Assembly (NCBI GenBank): GCA_016748015.1
Contig: JAAOMT010000129.1
Location: 1,159,206-1,223,205 of the forward strand
Origin: Geosiphon pyriformis uo1
Taxonomy: Eukaryota; Fungi; Glomeromycota
DNA length: 64,000 nucleotides
Direction: 5' to 3'
The notes under the pieces are model-generated. The model did not search any database and was not told the DNA's origin. It worked only from the letters and a program-made list of their open reading frames with translations. Of this stretch, positions 40,070-64,000 are shown piece after piece. Each line of letters begins with the position of its first letter. Positions within the stretch are counted from its first letter, which is position 1. The translations under genes and the position numbers were made by a program.

Positions 40070-40900
40070 TTTTTTTAAAAGATTCTTTTAATAAAAATGT
40101 TCGAGATGAATAGCTCTTCAAGAGCTCTAATTTTATACCAATTGTTTGGCAAGAAAAGCTTAAAGGGTTCTTCTACTCGCTCGGTAAATTTGTATAATGT
40201 TTTTTAGATAAAAAAAAGGGAAAATAAATAAACGAAAGAAAAAGAATGCGAGATATGGGAATTCATATTTCGCAACATAAATGTATAATATATATGTGCA
40301 ATTAATTGTTGTGATACAGTTGAATTCCAGACTCTGCTGATCTTCAAAGCCATTTTCAAAAATGGCCATCTAAATATTTAATTTGGTTTTTTAAAACTTT
40401 TAAAATATTGAATTATAAATATAAAAATTGTTTTTCAAACAATTTTTACTTTTAATAAATTTTAAATTTAATATGTCAAAGTTTTCGGTGACATTGTTCG
40501 CTAATAGAAGATGTCCTAATATAGTTTGAAGTAGTTTTGATCGGCTCGGGTGGCTGGTCACGTGCAGTATGCGCGACCACATTTAATGTATGACATTCAT
40601 GTCATGCGGTGGTTGGACTACAACTTATTCTATTTTTTTGTTATAACAAAGTATAATCCAATTATATGGGGCAGACTGCAACAAAACCAGACAAAGTGAA
40701 CATGTGCTAAAATTAATTGATGTGGCTAGAGGATTTGACCAATGTGAATGATGAAGACTTTAGTGGCTCATGCATTAAATCATGGATTAATTTTTACATC
40801 TTTCAAGCCATATTATAGCAGATGTGATAATATTCAAAATTACTAAGTTGAAACGGACACATATTTCATATAGGCCTATCTCTATATAAAAAATATAAAT

Positions 40901-41101
40901 ATGAAACTAATTTGCATTAAATCCACCATGGAACCCAAGAATTACAGCAGCATTAGAAGCATTTTAAAGAAAGCTCAAGGAGAAAAAATTACTCCATACA
41001 TTTTTAAAATAAATGACACCAAAATTCTCCAGGAATATCTAGATAAAGAAAAAATCACTTATGAAATTTATCTAGAAGAAAAAGTCCTAATCACGAATTA
41101 A
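40901..41101 (+). CDS. small intronless 66-aa ORF, possibly of bacterial origin
   Basis: Clean ATG-TAA ORF directly upstream of the TGA=Trp fragment. Confidence 0.4.
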   Translation: MKLICIKSTMEPKNYSSIRSILKKAQGEKITPYIFKINDTKILQEYLDKEKITYEIYLEEKVLITN

Positions 41102-41166
41102 GCAAAAAAAGAAAACTAGAAATTAAATAGTATAAATTTAATTAAATGTTATAAAAATAATTATTA

Positions 41167-41735
41167 TGAATAACATAAATGATAAACAATTATTTTTTAA
41201 AAAACAGCCAACAAAAAAGCCAAGAAATTATTAATGAATTAAATGAAAATTTTAAGAAAACTAAAACCGTCGGAGATGTTAGCTCGCTTTCAGTGGTATC
41301 GACAAAATGGACTACCTAACGAAATCAATTTTTTAATCGAAAAGTTTGCTCTTGAAGAGACGGGGAAAAATCGAGGCAGAATTCAACAAATTTATTCTTG
41401 AAAATGATTTTCCTAAATTAAGAGAATAAATAGATAATGCTATTAAAACTCGTGAAGAATTAGAAAGGTTAGAAAAATTAATACCGAGGCATGGTAGCAC
41501 TAATTACACAGATTTTGATGATTATTACGAGAGCGGAAAAAGATTATGAGAAAGTCAAATTGAATCGGAAAAGGAAACACAATGAGAACGAATTCATAAA
41601 GTTAATCAGAAACTGTGAAAAGAATTTCAACCCGTTTGAGTTAAAGAATATTTAGCCCGCAAGCAATTTTATTGAAAAAATAACTTGCCTGTCGAATTAA
41701 TTATATATTATAAAATATATAAGTCAAATTTATAG
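41167..41735 (+). pseudogene. gene fragment in genetic code 4 (TGA=Trp), putatively from a Mollicutes-related endobacterium
   Basis: Five in-frame TGA (41547, 41583, 41616, 41637, 41673) in 101 codons with no TAA, TAG or TGG; frameshifts upstream. Confidence 0.7.
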
Positions 41736-42186
41736 TTTAATTTTTAAGAGTAAAAAAATTATAGGTTTTTGTAAAATCACACTTTGTCAAAACATAAAAA
41801 AAGCTTATTTTATTTTATTTTTAAATATATTAAATTAAAATTTTAATATTTAAAATCATTAATTAATTTGAATTTTAAAAAAAGTTTAACAAAATTAAAT
41901 TTATTTTAAGCTTTTAAAAATGCATTTTAATTATTTTTTATTTATATATAACTAAAATTTTATAATAAATACAGTTTATATAGTTTTAATATACAATTAA
42001 TTATTTTAATATAAGTCAATAAATTTTGTAATCTATAATTTATTACAATTAAAGACTGTTTGCAAGGTCATAAATATTTAAAAAATAGATTTTTTATTTG
42101 TTTTAAATCATATAGATCTCTTAAACAATAATAAATTTAAATATTTTTTAAATCAAAGTACGTTTTAACATTTATAACAGAATTTC

Positions 42187-42188
<2 letters not shown>

Positions 42189-42230
<42 letters not shown>
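42189..42230 (+). repeat. (TTA)14 microsatellite
   Basis: Read directly. Confidence 0.95.
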
Positions 42231-42231
<1 letters not shown>

Positions 42232-42540
42232 GCTTTAACAAAGTAAGATTCTTCCACTGCACGTAATCAGCCACAGGATTTATGTTAAAACATCACTAAG
42301 CATTATACAACAACTCAGCAGAAACATACAAACCACGCGCCACACGGTTCCACACATGCGAAACATTAGAAGATTTTGGAACCAAAAATAATCCGAAATA
42401 GCTCAAATACCTAACACCAAACAAACCAATACCAGGCAAGCTATTCAAAGCCACGGAAAACAAAGCCCTCTGGCATCCGCATCGGCAGCACATTCAAACA
42501 CATGATCCGAGTATTCTACAATCCCACACCTAAACACGTT
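42232..42540 (-). mobile_element. LINE ORF2 3' fragment
   Basis: FRCGIVEYSDHVFEC zinc-finger remnant, like CLLCSGVEFSDHAFTC at ~52070-52110. Confidence 0.6.
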
Positions 42541-43901
42541 TGTTTTAATTACAAAAAAAAACAATTAAGTTTAATTTTTTAATTATAGAATTTACAATCT
42601 TAATTTCAACAATTTTTATCTAAAATTATATTTTTTATTAGTAATAATACCAAAAAGATTAAAATTATGTGTTAATAAAAAGTAATAATTTTAATATAAA
42701 ATATTAAGTTTGCAAATTAAATAATAAAAACTTTAAATACAACAAAAAATTTAAAAAAGTCTTTTAACAATTAAATAATCCAAGTTTTAACATTTATAAT
42801 AATATTAATATTCAGAAATCTTTTATTAAATATAATGTTTTTTTACAAAGTATTAGTTTTAATAATAGCATTATTAAAAGCTTTTTTAAAATTAAAAATA
42901 ATAATAACATATTTTTGCTAATAATTAAAATCAAAAAATATAACAAATTTAATTATATATTAAAACAATTATATTACTTAATTTTAAAAGTAGTATAACC
43001 AAAAAAAATCGAATATTTCTGATCATAAAAGCATTACAAAAAGCAATATATTTTTTTTAATAAAAAAAATTTTAATATTGTTTTTTTTATTAACAAAAAT
43101 AGCTTTAAAATCTTAAAATACACAATAATATATTATTACAAATTAATAAATTTCAATTTAATATTAAAAATAATATTTAAAGAAACATTATAAAATATTA
43201 TAATAATAAAAATAAATTGAAAACAAAAATTATAAAAAACTTAGCAATTTTAAAATTAATTTATATTAATTTTAACAAATATGTTATTGCTATTATTGTC
43301 TAAAAATTGTTTTTAATTTTTAATATTATTTAAATAATAATAAAAACAAAAAAACAAAAGCTTAATTACTGGTTTTTGGTTAAAAATTTTTGGGCTTTTA
43401 ACAATTATAACAGCAACATTAAAATTATTTAGAATAAATTATTTTAAAAAACTTTGAAAAAAAAAGTACTTTCAATTAAAGACAAAAAGTGAGTAATTAA
43501 AAACTGTTTTTATTTTATATTACTTAAAAAAAATGTTTTAACAAAGTATTATTTAATTGTTTTTACTGTTAAATGAACTTTTTAGATAAAAAAAATAAGA
43601 ATTACTTTTTTACTTTTTGTTCCAGTTGTAATTGTAAAAATACAAAAAAAAATTTTTTTCAAAATAATAATACATATATTTTAAAAAACAAAGACATTTA
43701 TAAATAAATAATTTTAATATTTAATTTATATATAAAACACACATAATTAATTATAATAAATAACATTAAGAATTAATCATATTAATTTGATAATCTTTGC
43801 CAAGGTTGCATGCATAATCTGATCAGTATTTTTAAAAACTTTTAACTAGCGGGTTATTCGTTTCAGTTTGGACCACCATACCATTGACTACAACTTCAAA
43901 T

Positions 43902-54599: not shown

Positions 54600-57500
54600 A
54601 AAGAGCAAATTTTGAAAAAAAATTTTTGTTTTTTATCTCACTTGTTATATTACTTTCAATATTTTTCAAGCTAATAATCTCTTTGTAGTGAACCTGGAGA
54701 CTGCTTCAAATAGCAGTATGTTTAAGAAAAAAGCCCCAAAAGGTGCCCTTTATGGTCCTGTTAGTGGTACTTTCTCTCAGAAAAAGAAGGTTTTTGTTGA
54801 CAATATAAAGCACTCTGAAGATGAAAGAGAAATTTTGTTGGTTAGACTTGGTATCAGTGAGAGCATGTATTCAGATATGGACAGTGAGTTCAATAACAAT
54901 GAGGCTGGTGGCTTTGTGGTGGGCTCAAATGGTGGTTTTCTTCTTGGCTCAGCAGCTTCTACTTCCAAAGCTAGGAAAAGGAATAATGGTTTGATTAGTG
55001 GTTCTCCTGTTGGTATTATAGACTTTGAAATAAATGAAAAAGTGGGCTCTCTCCTTCCTTCCCTTAATTTTTCTCTTGACAAAAAGTGGATTGATTCTAA
55101 GATTGTGAAAACTCAGATTGAAGTGTTAGTTAAAAAATCTTTTGCTTTGGACATTAATCTATCAGCTATGGAAGAGAAATCAGCAACAGCCAAAACTTAA
55201 TTTATTAGGAAATTATTTTCATTAGTCAATGATTTTGGGAGGGCCACTACCTCCTCAAAATTTGAAGGAATCATTCAATCTACCTTCACTTCTGAAAATA
55301 GCATGAAAATAGCTGTTTCATTAACCAGGGAAAAGAAGATCACTGTAAACAGTGATCTTAGGAGACAAGAAATAAGATCAGATTAGACTGTGGTGATTAA
55401 GAAAATTCTCATGGATACACCTAAAGATATGATTGTTGCTGCAGTATTTGAATTTGGAAAAATTAAGTCAATCAAAATCCAACTGATTAGAATATGGCAA
55501 AAAGCTGTAGTAGAGTTTGCTGAATTAGACCAAACTGATTTGTTGGCTTTTAAGTGGTCATTCCTGATTGGTAAAGATTCTGTGCACATAGTCAAAGCAG
55601 TAGAAGATCATAAGACTTGGGCATCAAAAGATTGGTTCAGAGCACTTTTGTTTACTTTGCCAATGGAAATGATAGTATATGATCTTGGGACTCTTCTGGA
55701 AAGAGCTGGTAAGAAAACTTGTGTCATAAACAGATCTCTGGAGACTGGTAATAGGATTTGCTATGCTGTGATTGGTTTTAAATCTAATGACAATCTGGAA
55801 TCTGCCTTTTGCACGAAACCTATCTATGATGAAATAAAACTATCTTGGGCTAGAATAGATTTGGTTCATTATGAGAAATGTGGGTGTTTTGGGTATTCAA
55901 CTCTTGAATGTGGTGTTTCAGAAGTATTTGTGCTGCTGTTACCTAAGAGATTATATAAAAAGATTGCTTCAGAGAAATTTCACTTTTGGCTCACTAAATT
56001 GTATGAGAAAAAAGATGTTCCAATCTCTTGTCCAGCTGCTTTTGGTGGCAAATTTGGGTCCAAGTGGTCTTGCTAGCTAATTCTTCTGGTGGTGCTTGCT
56101 TCAAGTCTGGTTTTAGTTCCTCTCCTCTTGGCATTTCACGTTTGGGTGACACTCTTTCTCCTACTTTAGCTAATAGCTCTGGCTTGAATGATTATTTGGT
56201 GGTCTTAGAATGCTCTTTGGAGCTTTTGTCAGATCAGGTTTTTGTGTTGTTGAAAAAGTTGAGCTTTGTGGAGTTGGTGTCTTTAACTGCATCCTCTTCT
56301 GCCCCCCCTCTGGTTGCTCCTGTTTTGTTAGTTTCTGTTCTGAATTCAGATATGGTTTTAGACAGTGCATTGGTATTATTTATTTCCTCTCTCTCTGTTG
56401 GTTTGGACTTAATAGCTAATTTCAGCTTTAGTAGTTCTAAGGTCCTAACCACCAAAGTGAGTAAATTAGAATTCAAAATGATGGCTTTGGAGGCTTCAAT
56501 TCATTCAGTTTTGAGAAGATTGGATCATTGGTGTTCTGGTTTGGATTTGTTAACTCTCTTTTTGTCTCAATGATTGATTTAGTTTGGAAAATTGCTACAT
56601 GTAATGCTCGGGACATAAACAATCCTGCAAAACAAGAAGATATTGTCCATTGACATAAGAATATAAGTAATTTGATTTTTATCATTACAGAAACTAAGTT
56701 GAAAAGTAGAGTCTATCCATGGATTACTAATAAGTTCAATGGTGTCCATGTTTTTACTTCTGGTTTAAATTCTGGATACTTGGATTCTGGTGTTGCCATT
56801 GTTATAAACTCTTCTTTGGCAAAACATATGTGTAAGGTTTCTGAGGTGCCTGGTCAGCTTTTATCCATTAGATTTCTTTTCAAAAATAAACTTTCTGTGT
56901 TAGTTTTGGGGCTTTATGCTGGTACTTTATCTGAAGTTCAGTTTTCACAGGCTGGTGAAATCAACTCTCTTATTACAAAGACTATTAACGAATCTTCTTT
57001 TATCATCTTTGGTGATAACTTCAATAAAGATGGTTCACAAAAATGTGCTAGTTTTAAAAAGTGTATTGATTTGGGACTGGTCAATTCTTTGATAAGTAGT
57101 TCAGTTATGAATTGTCTTACATGGAAGAATTCAAAAGGTGTGGAAAAAACAATTGATTATGTATTGGTTTTATCAAATTTAGTTAATATGATAATGGATT
57201 GCAATATTATGAATGTTGAGAATCACTTTGACACTAATTATCAAGCTGTTTCTGTGTTAGTATGTCTGGGTGGTTTGCTGAACACTTAGTTGAATTCTCT
57301 TTGTAGACAGGTGAATAAGGATCACTAGAAGTTTGATTTTAAGGGGGCTGATAATGCAAAGTGGGGCAAGTTTAAAAATTCTATGGCAGCCAATGCTGCT
57401 ATGTTCTCTGATAATTTTACTATTTCCAAGCAATCCTTAGACTTGGATGTAATATAAGATATGGTTTGCAAGATTATAATACTTTCGGCTAATGAGATAT

Positions 57501-60170
57501 TCAAGAAGAAATGATTTAAGAGCTTTGATAGTATTTTTACTAGAGAATCTTCTAGGTTTCATAAGCTAGAGCTTTTGGTCTCAAAAATTGCTAAGGCCTT
57601 TCATGAGAAGGATATTGATAGATTCACTTTTCTTATGGACCACTGGAATTTTTTGGACAGTGTTATAGCTTCAATTGTGCAAGAAATTGTGAACTCTGGT
57701 ACAGGTTTTGATCATGTACACTCAGCTCTTTTTAGTGTGCAAAAGACATATCATGTCTCTAAGCTTGCTGAGTTTTTGCAAGCTGAAGAATCAAGAATAA
57801 GATCAACTATTGATAAGTAGATGGAGAATTTTGCAGTTAACAAAGGTAACACAATCAGGAGTGTACTGGAGCGTCTTTTTCGAAAGGTGGTTTTGGACCA
57901 CCTGGTGGTTGAAGATAAACTAATTCTGGAATCTGACTTAGTTAAAACCAAGGTTGATGTTATCATGAAAGGTTAAACTAGGAAGCATAATGTGGTGAAA
58001 GATTTTTCTGGTGATTAGTCTTATCAATATCGGCCTTTGGAGTATGTTTTTGATAATGCTTTTTCAAATATTATGTGTTCAGTTGGTTTTGATGAGCTAT
58101 TTGGAGTGGTTTTTAATCTGTTTAATGACAAAGCTGCTGGTCTTTCTGGAGTGTCAAACAAGCTTTGAAAGCATTATGACAAATTGGTCTTGGATATGCT
58201 TTTGGTGCTTTTGAACTCCTGTTTGTTTTGCGAGTCTGTGCCTAATGCTTAAAAGGAAGCTTGAGTATTGATGATTCCAAAACTGTATGAGTAGAAAGAA
58301 GTTCTTACAAACACTTGACCTATTGTTTTAATTGAAACTGCCCACAAAATCTTTTCCAAGATTTTCTTGGACAGAATTTCTTTGGCATGCAGCTCTTTTG
58401 ATGTTTTGCATGGAAACAATTTCTTAGTCCTAAAAAGTATGACAACACAATCTTCCATTTTTGCTGTAGATTCAATTATTGAGGATGCATTGGAAAAAAA
58501 CCATGAATTCTGGTTGGTCTTGCAAGACATGTGAAAAACTTATAACTCTGTCAGGTAAGAGCATCTTAGGAACAGTTTAGTTAGAATAAAGATGTGTGAC
58601 AAGTTCATTAGATTTTTTGGTGATATTCATAATAGTTGTGTTAATAGGATAATGACAGATTTTGGTCTAACAGATAGATATCAAATGCATAATGGTTTGA
58701 ATCAGGGGGAAGTGTTCTTACCACTTTTCTGACACATATTTTATGATTCTCTTTTGTGTAAAGTTAAAAAACAGAAAAGCATATGTAGTTATAGACTAAA
58801 CTTTTATTTTATTGCCAGATCTGGTCATATAGAATCTTAGACTGAATTAACATCTTTTTTTGCTGCTGGTGCTTTTGTTGATGACACAATCTGGATTGGT
58901 AACAGCCAAGCTGCAACCCAACACATTTTTGATGTTGCTAGTGAGTTTTTTCATATCAATGACATTTCTATTAACAATGACAAGACAGTGGTAATTCTTA
59001 TTAATTGCAGAGTTACATATTCTAAGTTGTTTATTAGTGGTTCACCTATATCCATTGCCAAAAAAAGAGAGTTTTGTCACTACCTGAGAATTTTTTTGTC
59101 AACTGAGAGTTTATCAAAGCCTAACCTGGCTAAGGCAAATTCTAATGTTAGGTTTTTCACCAATCTGGTTTTAAAAAAGGCCATTTCTAATAAACAATTT
59201 TCATATCTGGTGTCAGCAGTTCTCTACCCTATTGTCAGCTACAGAACACAGTTCAGTTTTGTTTCTATTGGTATGTGTAATAAGTAAGATTTTTTGATTC
59301 ACAGGAGCTTAAAGCTAAAGTCCAGTTTACCTTTTGATTTTCTCAATAATGCACTTTATCATCCTTCATTGTATGATTTGAAAACTTTTGAGCAAGTCCA
59401 AGCTAAAAGCAAGATTGCTTTTATTATGTGTTTTACAAACTCTGTTGAGATTTTGGGTCAGTTGTTTTTTTATAGGTCACATAATTTGCAGGTTTTGTCT
59501 TGGAATACACTCCATCTATTGGTGTCCTTAGCCTGTATTAAAATCAGTGCTTCTAATAATTTTTTGGCAGATTTGGTTTGCATTTTTTTTGGGTATGGTT
59601 TGTCTCTAGGTGGTCATGTGAACAATTTTTTTTATTTTCATGATGGAACTCTTATGTTGTCTGTTTTTAGTGAAACTAGTTACTTTAAGTTTTTTTCATT
59701 ACTTCAAAGATATGGTATTGCTTTTGTTGAACAGCTCTGTGGTAAAAATGAGGCTGTTTTTGATTGGAGAACATTCAAGTATTGAAAAAGACTGGACCCA
59801 CATGACCCTATTCCTGAATGGTTTAAACTTTCTGTTGACTTTTTTAATGGTGTTGCTCTTTTTTCTGTCTGTTTTTCTCCTGTGGGTGTTGTTGAGTCTT
59901 TTGATATTTTAGAATCTAGTGAGTTTGAATTGGTTTCCAGTTAGTTATTAGGTCTTGGAAATAACAGCCTTTCTGTCTATATGAATGGATCTCTAAGGGA
60001 CTTGGGAAGTGTTGACATAAAAGCTGGTACTGTGGTCTTTTTTGAGAATATAAGCCTGGATTTAGAGGTCAGGGTTTTTGGTTTAATGTCTTCTACTTTG
60101 GCTAAATTGCAGGCTATCATACTGGCTTTTGAGTGTGTTCCTCCTAATAGCTCAGTTAGTGTCTTTACAA
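54600..60170 (+). mobile_element. LINE: ORF1 (~54718-56573) and ORF2 (56570+: APE, RT, RNase H), cut by element E
   Basis: IATCNAR, ITETKL, GDNFN, IDYV (APE); PIVLIE, QDM.K.Y.SV, QGEV, AFVDD (RT); VYMNGSL..STLAKLQAI (RNase H); many stops. Confidence 0.93.
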
Positions 60171-63100
60171 TGTTACCAAACAAAATTAGAGATATTATTT
60201 AGCATGAAATTATCTTATAAATCCTATCATTAATTAGCATATATTATCGTTTCAAATTATCACTTATTACATTAGCAAAATGTCCGAAATTATCATTTAA
60301 TTAATAACCCAATTTATACACAACACAAATGTAACCTAATTGCAATAATCAAATCATGCAATACCCCGAACTATGTAACATTCAAAAGTTCGCCAAAATT
60401 TGTAGAAATTTGTCAAAATAATTGATAGTTCACTGAAATATCTAATAGTTTGCAGAAATAACTTGTAGTTCGCCAAAATGTATCTTTAGTTCAGTGAAAT
60501 TGTAGAAAATAGCAAAGTTCAAGTTCATAGAATAGTGTTATAACAAGTTGTATAAAAGAAGAGCATCTCTCTTCGAAAAAATGTATCTTACTTTAGATTT
60601 ATCACTTAAAACCATTCCTATATACACAAAAAGAAATAAATATCAAATAATTCGAAAAACCAAATTTTTTAATTATTGCACTTGAAAAATTCCCAAAACC
60701 CAACTAACATTTTGAAATTGATTAGCTACCAATTTCAGTAAACTGTTAATGACTCTAGGCCTGGATAAAAAAACGTTTCCCTTGATAAAATCCTATTTCT
60801 TTTACATTTCTTTTATTTTTTTTTTCTTTTTTTATTACAATCATTAAGGTAGCCTACAGACAAGATTCCTGTAGAAAAGTTGACTTTCACAGCAAAGTAA
60901 CTACACATTTTTTGTGAGCTTCCAGATGAGCAATTCCTGAGAAAGAGTTGACGTTTACTACAACATAACTACATAAAGCAACTGGCATAGAATTGGCCAT
61001 TCCACTTATAAGCCCAGCAAGTTCAAATTATAAGAGATAATTTAAAGATAAATTCAGTTACTGGAGGTCCAACTACTTCCTGGAAACGTGAATTCACAAC
61101 AAATCAACATTAACAACATTTAAGAAAAGAGACCAAAAATCTCCAGTAACATTTGGTGCTCTCTTACAGAAATAACACAGCAACAACAAAATTCAAAGTG
61201 GTGACCACACCAGACGCAACAACTCTAGAGTATTACCAATTAATTTACATTCACTGCAAGCAAAGATTCAACATTCCAGATGGAATTGAAGTTGTCAAGA
61301 AATTAGTATACCAATACATTGAAAACTGCATCAACAATTATCTTTTTGGAAATTACAATATCTCAGAAGTTAGAAGCAATCTTTACAATAATTTAGCACA
61401 CTATTCACAGTTGGAAACTGAAGACCTTAACAGTGAAACACTTGCCACTTATTTTCACAAACTTAATTTTAACATTATCAAATACTGTAAAGAAACATAT
61501 CCAGTGCAGTCTCAATACTCTATTGATTTTGAATCGGAAACAGAAACAAGCAACAAAGGCAAAAACAAATTAAAACAATACTCAAAAACCACCCCAAATA
61601 CTCCAACACTACCAAAAACAACTGCCAAACATTTACAAACACCTGAACAAAGAACCAGTTTAAAACTTCCACTTACTATCACACTTTTTCCAGCTTCACT
61701 TGCACAAGCACAAATGCCTAATTCACCCTTGAATCGATTTGCAAGACCAAAAGATTTTACATCACTCAAAAGTCCCATCAGACAACAAGAACCCCTTTAA
61801 ACTAATTCCAATCTTCTTGACTTTCTAGCTGAAAATCAAAGTGAACACTCTAAGACAGCAGCAAACGAAAAAAATGAACCTGAAATATCTGAAGAAAAAT
61901 CAATAGACAGTGAAAACAAAGAAGACGAAATGACAACATACATTGCAAAAATCCCTGAATTTAATGGAGAAGACATTGAGACCAGTCCCCAAGAATGGCT
62001 CGACCAAGTTACTAAAGCTGGAGATGCAAATGGATGGAATGCTGCCAGAATGTTAAGAACAATTCCCTACTTTCTCAAAGAAACAGCATGAGAATGGTTT
62101 GAAAACTTGGCCGTCCCATTTAATAATTGGAACGCTTTCAAAGCAGTCTTCCTTGAACAGTTCACCAACAATAATACCTCCATTACCCTTCACAATCATT
62201 TTCGAAATATCAAACAAGAACCCTCTGAATCTGTTATGACTTATATTGGGAAATTCAACAAACTTCTCAAACGAATTCGCCAACTCGAAACAAACAATTA
62301 TTATTCTAATGCTCAAATCTTGGATTAATTTATCACTGGTCTAAAAGATAAACTAATTAAAAAGGTTCGTCCATATGCACCAGAAGATTTAAACTCTGCC
62401 ATACAGTATGTGAAAAGATACAAAATGGCCATGGAAGAGGCCAATTGCACAAAACTTGTAAATTTGGCAATTGGAGAAACCAGCTCAGCAGCTAAGGAAA
62501 AAATTGACCAACTCACAAAGAAGGTTGAAAACTATTTCACCCATCAACAACAACAGCAACCCCAAAGATATCAACCACTCCAAAGATGAAATCAAAATAA
62601 CTTTGCACTACTTTCCAATAACCAGCCTCAGAATTGCCATTACTGTGGAATCTCTGGCCACTGGAAAAAAGATTGCAGAAAGCTACAACAAGACCAACAA
62701 AATAGGAGTAATCAACGTTACTCTCCACTACAGCAATCTTATTATCAACCACTACCACCAGCTTATTATCCACCAAGACCCCAATACCAAAATAACTATT
62801 ATTAGCCTGCCCCACAGCCAATCCAATAGCAATACCAACAACCACCCACACAACATTATCAAGTACCTGCTCGAAAACTGATTACACAAAATCAATTCAT
62901 ACCACAAAACCGATACCAAGTAAACAACAATAGAATCAGTTCGAACAACCAATTGGTTTCCCGAAATTCCATTCAACCAAGACCCAACCACTACCATACT
63001 CAATCCAGTTATTTAACAATGCCAGAAGAACAGGATTTTCACCATACTGCACCCTCAAAAGATAGCACTGCACAACAAAACCCTTCCTATACTCCCACCA

Positions 63101-64000
63101 GCCAGAATTGCTGAAAATGCTAACCTTTCAGATATATTCCCTTTTGAGTTCGAAGCAAATGAGTTACCATTTCTGCTTAGCAATGCAGCCGCCAATAAAC
63201 AAAAAGCAATCATGGCTATGTACACTGAAACAGAAGTCGAAGGAAAGACAATTCGCTTGATTCTAAACAGTGGATCTGCCGGAAGCATTATTACCTACTA
63301 GTTAATGCAACAGTTGAAGAGAAATGTCGACCGACCAGCTTAAACAGTAATTGTCACTGCTGATGGCATGAAAAAGACCCCAGTAGGAGAAATTGACAAT
63401 TTTCCATTCACTCTTAATGGAATCATCATTTCAGTCAAAGTTTTTGTAATAGATGCACCCCAGTACCAAGCTCTTGTCAAAAATGATTGGCTTCAAAAAG
63501 CCAATACTAATTTGAATTGGGAAACACAAGAGTTAACAATCTCCTACCAAGAACAACATGCCTGAGTACCTGCCACTTATGGTACATTCAATAAATGCTC
63601 TGAAAAAGCCCCGGCTTTTGAATTCAAACCGGAAGAGGAAAAACCCCTCATTGAAACATTCATGGCTCTTAAATCAATGTCCAACTGGACTGATGAAACA
63701 GAACAAGAACATTTTACCCCACACTGTGAACCCGAAACCTCTGGATGAAATATACCTTACTCAAAACCTGAACCAAGAAAACAATGCCCCTATATTCCCC
63801 TTAAATGTAAGGACTGCTACAAGAAACTATCATCAATGGGGGCCTGCATTTTACCTGAACAAGAATATGAAAATCATACTTGTTATTACTGCAAGGCTTG
63901 CCACAGAGAACGATAGGGCCATCTAATAAAAAGAAGCGGAAAATGGGACAACACCCCTTGTTTGACTTGTGGAAATATGCTACTGGAAGAATGCAATTGA
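60171..64000 (+). mobile_element. Gypsy element E (family 3): 5' LTR 60171-61151, PBS, gag, PR, Cys module; continues beyond the window
   Basis: PBS TGGTGCTCTC at 61154; gag knuckle CHYCGISGHWKKDC; PR LILNSGSAGS; KCKDC/YYCKAC/PCLTCG. Confidence 0.93.

Follow-up and report, generated by a model that had tools for sequence, protein, structure and literature searches.

The window, i.e., the whole stretch of 64,000 nucleotides of Geosiphon pyriformis DNA that was analyzed, contains a Na/Ca exchanger gene (CAX) and a fatty-acid-hydroxylase/ERG3-like gene, and between them about 1,030 bp (40668-41698) that constitute the left end of a transposon with terminal inverted repeats (TIRs). The TIR core, about 36-40 bp long, lies at 40668..40706 on the plus strand and is the only element end in the window (one match, none expected); with two or fewer mismatches allowed, it was found at 85 or more ends in the G. 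pyriformis genome and at none in the control. It is directly preceded by the target-site tetranucleotide ATAT (40664..40667, plus strand), and a tetranucleotide of the same form, AWWT, precedes 41 of 45 distinct element ends; the right-hand ATAT copy is gone together with the remainder of the element. From the TIR inward, 40668..41083 (plus strand) is the arm of a multi-copy element and corresponds to a long inverted repeat of about 430 bp in the copy of Funneliformis caledonium. The DNA upstream of the cargo gene is a repeat with 40 or more copies in the genome. It also holds a small ORF (40901..41119, plus strand) derived from the Mollicutes-related endobacteria (MRE), which has lost 21 bp near 41085 and terminates prematurely at 41099. 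Next comes a cargo gene in genetic code 4 (41166..41698, plus strand), and the element is cut off at an AT-rich host repeat (41695..41800), which lies outside it. The original prediction had the inserted DNA begin at 41167 and considered it a solitary stray insertion; in fact the insertion starts at 40668, and the gene is a passenger in the terminal part of a multi-copy TIR transposon, the transposase of which likewise uses code 4.

The cargo gene starts with the ATG at 41166 and is a pseudogene that retains the 5' part, about 55%, of a 357-amino acid frame, with 78-85% DNA identity to four homologues. Its frame is shifted three times (near 41197, 41253 and 41388), interrupted by a stop at 41427 and truncated at the 3' end; together with the lack of any contig over the gene in an RNA-like run, these lesions agree with the earlier view that the gene is dead. 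Its single TGG (41294) is TGA in all four aligned homologues. A stop-free piece of 39 residues, used as query, retrieved relatives from soil metagenomes and F. caledonium; the intact ones are 357-amino acid frames with TGA at every Trp, encoding a helical protein with two copies of a LARxQxYxxNxLPxE-type motif and a hydrophobic C-terminus. Comparison with the homologues gave a dN/dS of 0.07-0.28 across the TGA-containing part. Pfam and Atlas searches placed the protein in no family, and its AlphaFold model was unusable (pLDDT 46); an F-box-like look of the repeated motif, noticed by eye, gained no support from any test run. The gene is single-copy in the G. pyriformis genome, and blastn of 41160-41700 against phage and plasmid collections returned chance matches only. 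The window copy is a dead, truncated fragment, one witness of its family.

The reading frame that had drawn attention to the locus, 41430-41732 on the plus strand, spans 101 codons with TAA and TAG at its two bounds. As originally described, it has five in-frame TGA (41547, 41583, 41616, 41637 and 41673) and no TAA, TAG or TGG, and the peptide agrees with the one given then; however, only 89 of its codons belong to the cargo gene, since homology stops at 41698 and the last 11 or so codons are the adjoining AT-rich host repeat. CpG dinucleotides are also intact as stated, with an observed/expected ratio of 1.48 at the frame versus 0.10-0.17 in the blocks of transposable elements in the window. 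CpG loss of the transposable-element type was rejected as the origin of the TGAs, since the long frames have TGA solely at Trp columns, and no TAA or TAG. It had further been argued that random stops should be mostly TAA. The pattern is there, but its statistical weight is modest: in Markov simulations of the same stretch, 31% contained a frame of 89 or more codons free of TAA and TAG, and 1.6% contained such a frame with five or more TGA, while comparable TGA-rich frames are numerous elsewhere in the window. The TGA count by itself is therefore modest evidence, and the frame is accepted as real because of homology. Around the locus, 1-30500 and 54688-63926 are occupied by degenerate LTR retrotransposons and LINEs in which CpG is strongly depleted (0.10-0.17), several of the LTR remnants showing by eye a dUTPase-like frame (e.g., 97-417); 42179-42240 is a (TAT)n microsatellite, and 42241-42560 is C/A-rich and resembles, by eye, the degenerate 3' end of a minus-strand LINE.

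The location of the fragment in nuclear DNA between the two genes, another part of the original prediction, is supported by a unitig of the probable source DNA run, which covers 41041-42178 with zero differences at a depth of 104, equal to the single-copy nuclear depth of the flanking genes in the same run (92 for CAX, 90 for the ERG3-like gene). On the left, no single contig bridges 40691-41041, and the join to the unique CAX DNA therefore rests on the assembly. In the RNA-like run from the same sample, both flanking genes are under contigs, with spliced joints in CAX, and no contig lies over 41137-42639, although absence of a contig cannot prove silence.

The transposon family and its passengers

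A complete element of 8.1 kb in F. caledonium carries the same arm, ORF and cargo gene as the window, and the two match over 1,137 bp (74%), beginning at the same point. In that element a second, inverted arm lies 8.1 kb further on, and ATAT adjoins the element on either side; it sits between ATG11/calcipressin and other fungal DNA and contains the code-4 gene, a DUF7869 transposase and a fungal-type NTPase gene. The transposase domain was identified as Pfam DUF7869 (E 3.9e-18 in the complete relative L024), which is also the top match in the Atlas, where the nearest clusters are eukaryotic. The window copy has lost its transposase, and the G. pyriformis genome has 125 matches to it. The TIR core is found at both ends of eight elements, reaching 280-490 bp in some, and five of the eight have a perfect 4-bp duplication. 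On the strength of the DUF7869 DDE transposase, the TIRs and the 4-bp AWWT duplication, the family would be classed as Sola1-like. The GGG ends of the element are reminiscent of Sola2. Duplication of an AWWT target is a Sola1 hallmark (PMC3845634).

The passengers come in two kinds. Downstream of the transposase is code-4 cargo that varies by subfamily (HAD-like, LRR, coiled-coil or zinc-ribbon-like), and upstream is standard-code fungal cargo, namely kinase or Crinkler-type genes, two of which have clear GT-AG introns and branch sites. The complete relatives hold a DUF7869 DDE transposase together with bacterial genes in code 4 and fungal genes in the standard code, and lie in nuclear DNA between AWWT duplications. 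A near-identical fungal cargo gene (dS 0.002) is found in two elements (L051:6765-8918 and L093:1108-3384) whose transposases have diverged to dS 0.30, from which it follows that modules were swapped or recombined between elements. The G. pyriformis copies are spread over several subfamilies and interleaved with soil sequences. The small ORF of the arm (40901-41098) matches 487 database proteins, nearly all from soil metagenomes, which indicates that the arm is very abundant in soil fungi; its depth was 300-650 in two soil runs.

Two observations were made on the side. In two divergent elements, a Fanzor/TnpB-like gene lies on the minus strand upstream of the code-4 transposase (L046:3-2647 and L051:2-2645); it has a GTDPG motif, a weak Cas12f1-like TNB match (E 0.0075), the standard code and a dN/dS of about 0.2, and may belong to some of the elements. 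In two soil samples, a pair of element ends point toward one another, separated by the same 334-bp sequence (L069:5503-5838 and L076:6744-7079). This might be the junction of a circular form, but no terminal overlaps were found and adjacent elements are more likely.

Genetic code and endobacterial relatives

The code was examined on 99 transposase frames from the G. pyriformis genome, F. caledonium and 80 soil contigs. At five invariant Trp columns, TGA and TGG were counted 35/14, 22/32, 25/35, 73/9 and 50/41 times, respectively; stray TGAs outside the Trp columns were rare, and no copy among the 47 full-length ones was all-TGG. Pairs separated by dS >0.1 have a dN/dS of 0.08-0.14. Exchange of TGA and TGG at Trp, combined with a dN/dS near 0.1, means that the transposase was selected in a compartment where UGA is Trp, and by sequence analysis the transposase and cargo are both under purifying selection with that reading, which bears out the original prediction of genetic code 4. 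In 80 downstream ORFs, chosen in part because they contain TGA, the TGA:TGG ratio is 364:82; in MRE genomes it is 1805:732 and 866:64, with rplQ and other MRE genes likewise using TGA as Trp. MRE use translation table 4 (PMC10507103). No suppressor tRNA, or any tRNA gene, was found in 35 element loci.

The link to MRE rests on the arm ORF, the other cargo genes and the transposase, because the cargo gene of the window lacks a close homologue in the five MRE genomes, where its best match is a 36-residue motif in one of them (E 3.6e-5). The arm ORF is 54% identical (E 6e-18) to a gene on the DhMRE chromosome (C1:6641-6943), and DhMRE was its only match among 121 genomes of that order. The DhMRE gene lies directly upstream of, and overlaps, a PemK/MazF toxin gene (PF02452, E 3e-11); the arm ORF has no antitoxin match in Pfam, and no toxin gene is beside it in the element copies. 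The ORF family has a dN/dS of about 0.085. A gene near the DhMRE homologue (L173:648-1820) looks by eye F-box-like and fungal. Other cargo also has MRE homologues, namely the HAD-like (E 2e-38) and LRR (E 2e-27) proteins of DhMRE.

As for the transposase, a sister clade, whose left end is related and which has a frameshift at an A-run, resides in the chromosomal DNA of MRE. On an 11-kb code-4 contig (L212/L213), it follows rplV-rpsC-rplP, and the genes of this contig, housekeeping ones included, are 51-74% identical to those of DhMRE; this is the one locus with firm MRE chromosomal context, found identically in two runs. Two further code-4 contigs (L216, L217) carry sister-clade transposases as well. 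The sister clade is 53-57% identical to the nuclear transposase, and the six divergent transposases make up one side of a 100/100 branch (in a tree with long branches and a midpoint root only) and share one end point. The three MRE-context loci that were read (L212:2994-4822; L216:959; L217:1693) are split at a run of A8-A10, the shift being -1 in two and +1 in one; the conserved run is likely a programmed frameshift or slippage site. Transposases of the nuclear subfamily are unsplit. The left ends of the MRE-context copies resemble the nuclear TIR after ATAT, with a TATAAAA box between this end and the start codon, and a predicted promoter-like TATAAAAT is located just inside the left end; the right end of the element in the MRE chromosome was not found. 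The proposal of an MRE-type source thus holds through the arm ORF, the HAD-like and LRR cargo and the sister transposase.

The composite subfamily of the nucleus, with its unsplit transposase, was not found in any MRE genome searched, and this is the main gap of the model. The five MRE genomes in GTDB, located with an MRE 16S primer (10.1101/2023.07.25.550273) and none of them known from a host that carries the family, lacked the transposase and the TIR, as did 401 genomes of the order; the transposase was likewise absent from GTDB scans and viral contigs, and every long contig with the nuclear subfamily is fungal.

Proposed routes into the fungal nucleus

Together, these results make it probable that a composite cut-and-paste transposon of the Sola1 type is expressed and selected in MRE (Ca. 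Moeniiplasma) and inserts repeatedly into fungal chromosomes, the window copy being a dead one. A eukaryote-type Sola transposase would have entered MRE long ago and become an insertion sequence (IS), one lineage of which would then have captured MRE genes. MRE are cytoplasmic, and both the transposase made in the bacterium and the excised DNA could reach the nucleus after lysis of the cell or by export; basic residues clustered near the N-terminus of the transposase could serve as nuclear localization signal, and the transpososome would integrate at AWWT. Copies in the nucleus, unable to make transposase or cargo protein, would decay, as the window copy did. A one-way model is nonetheless incomplete, because cargo with introns needs a nuclear phase; its presence under shared ends suggests a return leg from nucleus to MRE. 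The full two-way shuttle, in which the transposase is made only in the endobacterium and the element integrates in the host by cut-and-paste, picks up intron-containing genes, returns, and spreads between fungal orders through host switches of MRE, is a tentative extension to which we give somewhat less than even chances.

The most serious alternative, although unlikely, is that a few entries from MRE were followed by multiplication within the nucleus, driven in trans by a host-readable transposase, either an all-TGG copy that escaped detection or a Sola1 of fungi that is related to the element. It would fit the fungal nature of all long contigs, the closeness of some copies within one genome (dS 0.04-0.13) and signs of recent nuclear events, such as inverted repeats 99.6% identical (L121) and a short, internally deleted copy (L130). 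However, purifying selection is still evident between closely related subfamilies (dN/dS 0.14 at dS 0.1-0.3), the exchange of TGA and TGG is ongoing, and none of the full-length copies is all-TGG, so that nuclear multiplication could add to the MRE-transposon explanation but cannot replace it. Far less probable is a fungal transposon confined to the nucleus whose UGA codons are read through during cytosolic translation. Leaky reading of UGA as Trp exists in eukaryotes, and the copies are almost solely in nuclear DNA; against this, two to nine such events would be needed per gene, the leaky UGA-C context is not enriched (C follows 28 of 219 TGAs), the 35 loci offer no suppressor tRNA and the window copy no RNA contig, and the cargo has MRE homologues and operon-like spacing.

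Equally improbable is that MRE DNA was inserted once and passively, or that the assembly is chimeric here, despite the single copy of the cargo gene in the genome and the interval on the left that no one short-read contig bridges, since the insert starts exactly at a TIR after ATAT, matches a complete element from another fungal order, has nuclear depth and bears neutral lesions. Code 4 is also that of fungal mitochondria, and terminal inverted repeats are found on linear plasmids, so the compartment might be a mitochondrion or a mitochondrial or linear plasmid, with NUMT-like copies in the nucleus. We consider this the least probable reading, because cargo and transposase homologues occur in MRE chromosomes beside bacterial ribosomal-protein and toxin genes, the plasmid, phage and viral collections gave no match, and the target duplications point to transposition; all identified homologues are element-borne or MRE, in collections searched without mitogenomes.

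Known systems and biological meaning

The MRE transposon resembles Sola1, as described where PMC3845634 cites Bao et al. 2009, in its DUF7869 DDE-type transposase, TIRs and 4-bp AWWT duplication, but differs in having a transposase in code 4, IS-like sisters in an endobacterial chromosome, and both bacterial and fungal cargo. Sola1 is known from Rhizophagus (PMC5751038), and transposases account for 1-8% of the non-orphan genes of MRE (PMC4916391). With MRE insertion sequences, the element shares code 4, compact chromosomal copies, the A-run frameshift and the promoter-like sequence inside the left end; unlike them, its transposase is of eukaryotic type and dozens of derivatives are in the host nucleus. 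Frameshifting at A-runs is common to many bacterial IS. Like Wolbachia inserts and NUMTs, the window copy is symbiont DNA preserved as a nuclear pseudogene, but the present element has precise ends and target duplications, which imply that transfer was enzyme-driven and repeated rather than passive. Pack-MULEs and Starships similarly have variable passengers inside element ends, effector-like Crinkler kinases included, and spread across species; they differ in transposase, and the passengers here are in two genetic codes. Kinase and LRR genes are also known traffic between fungi and MRE, gene transfer from fungus to MRE being reported in PMC10507103 and in Naito 2015 and Torres-Cortes 2015 as cited in PMC5982333. 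No description of a code-4 Sola element, or of derivatives of an MRE insertion sequence in the host nucleus, was found in a literature search that covered few subscription papers; the endobacterial-code Sola1-like transposon is real and apparently undescribed.

MRE genomes contain many kinase and LRR genes derived from fungi, for which the route of traffic is unknown (PMC10507103). A transposon that is selected in a bacterial code and has clean target duplications in the host nucleus is a concrete, testable vehicle for such traffic. It would also stand out as an active mobile element able to move between a bacterium and the nucleus of a eukaryote, which is unusual. Together, the element ends and the TGA signature explain mis-annotated, TGA-split 'fungal' genes in assemblies of Glomeromycotina and record, with dates, earlier infections of the fungi by MRE. 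The transposon may thus be the vehicle that moves symbiont DNA into the nucleus of the host.
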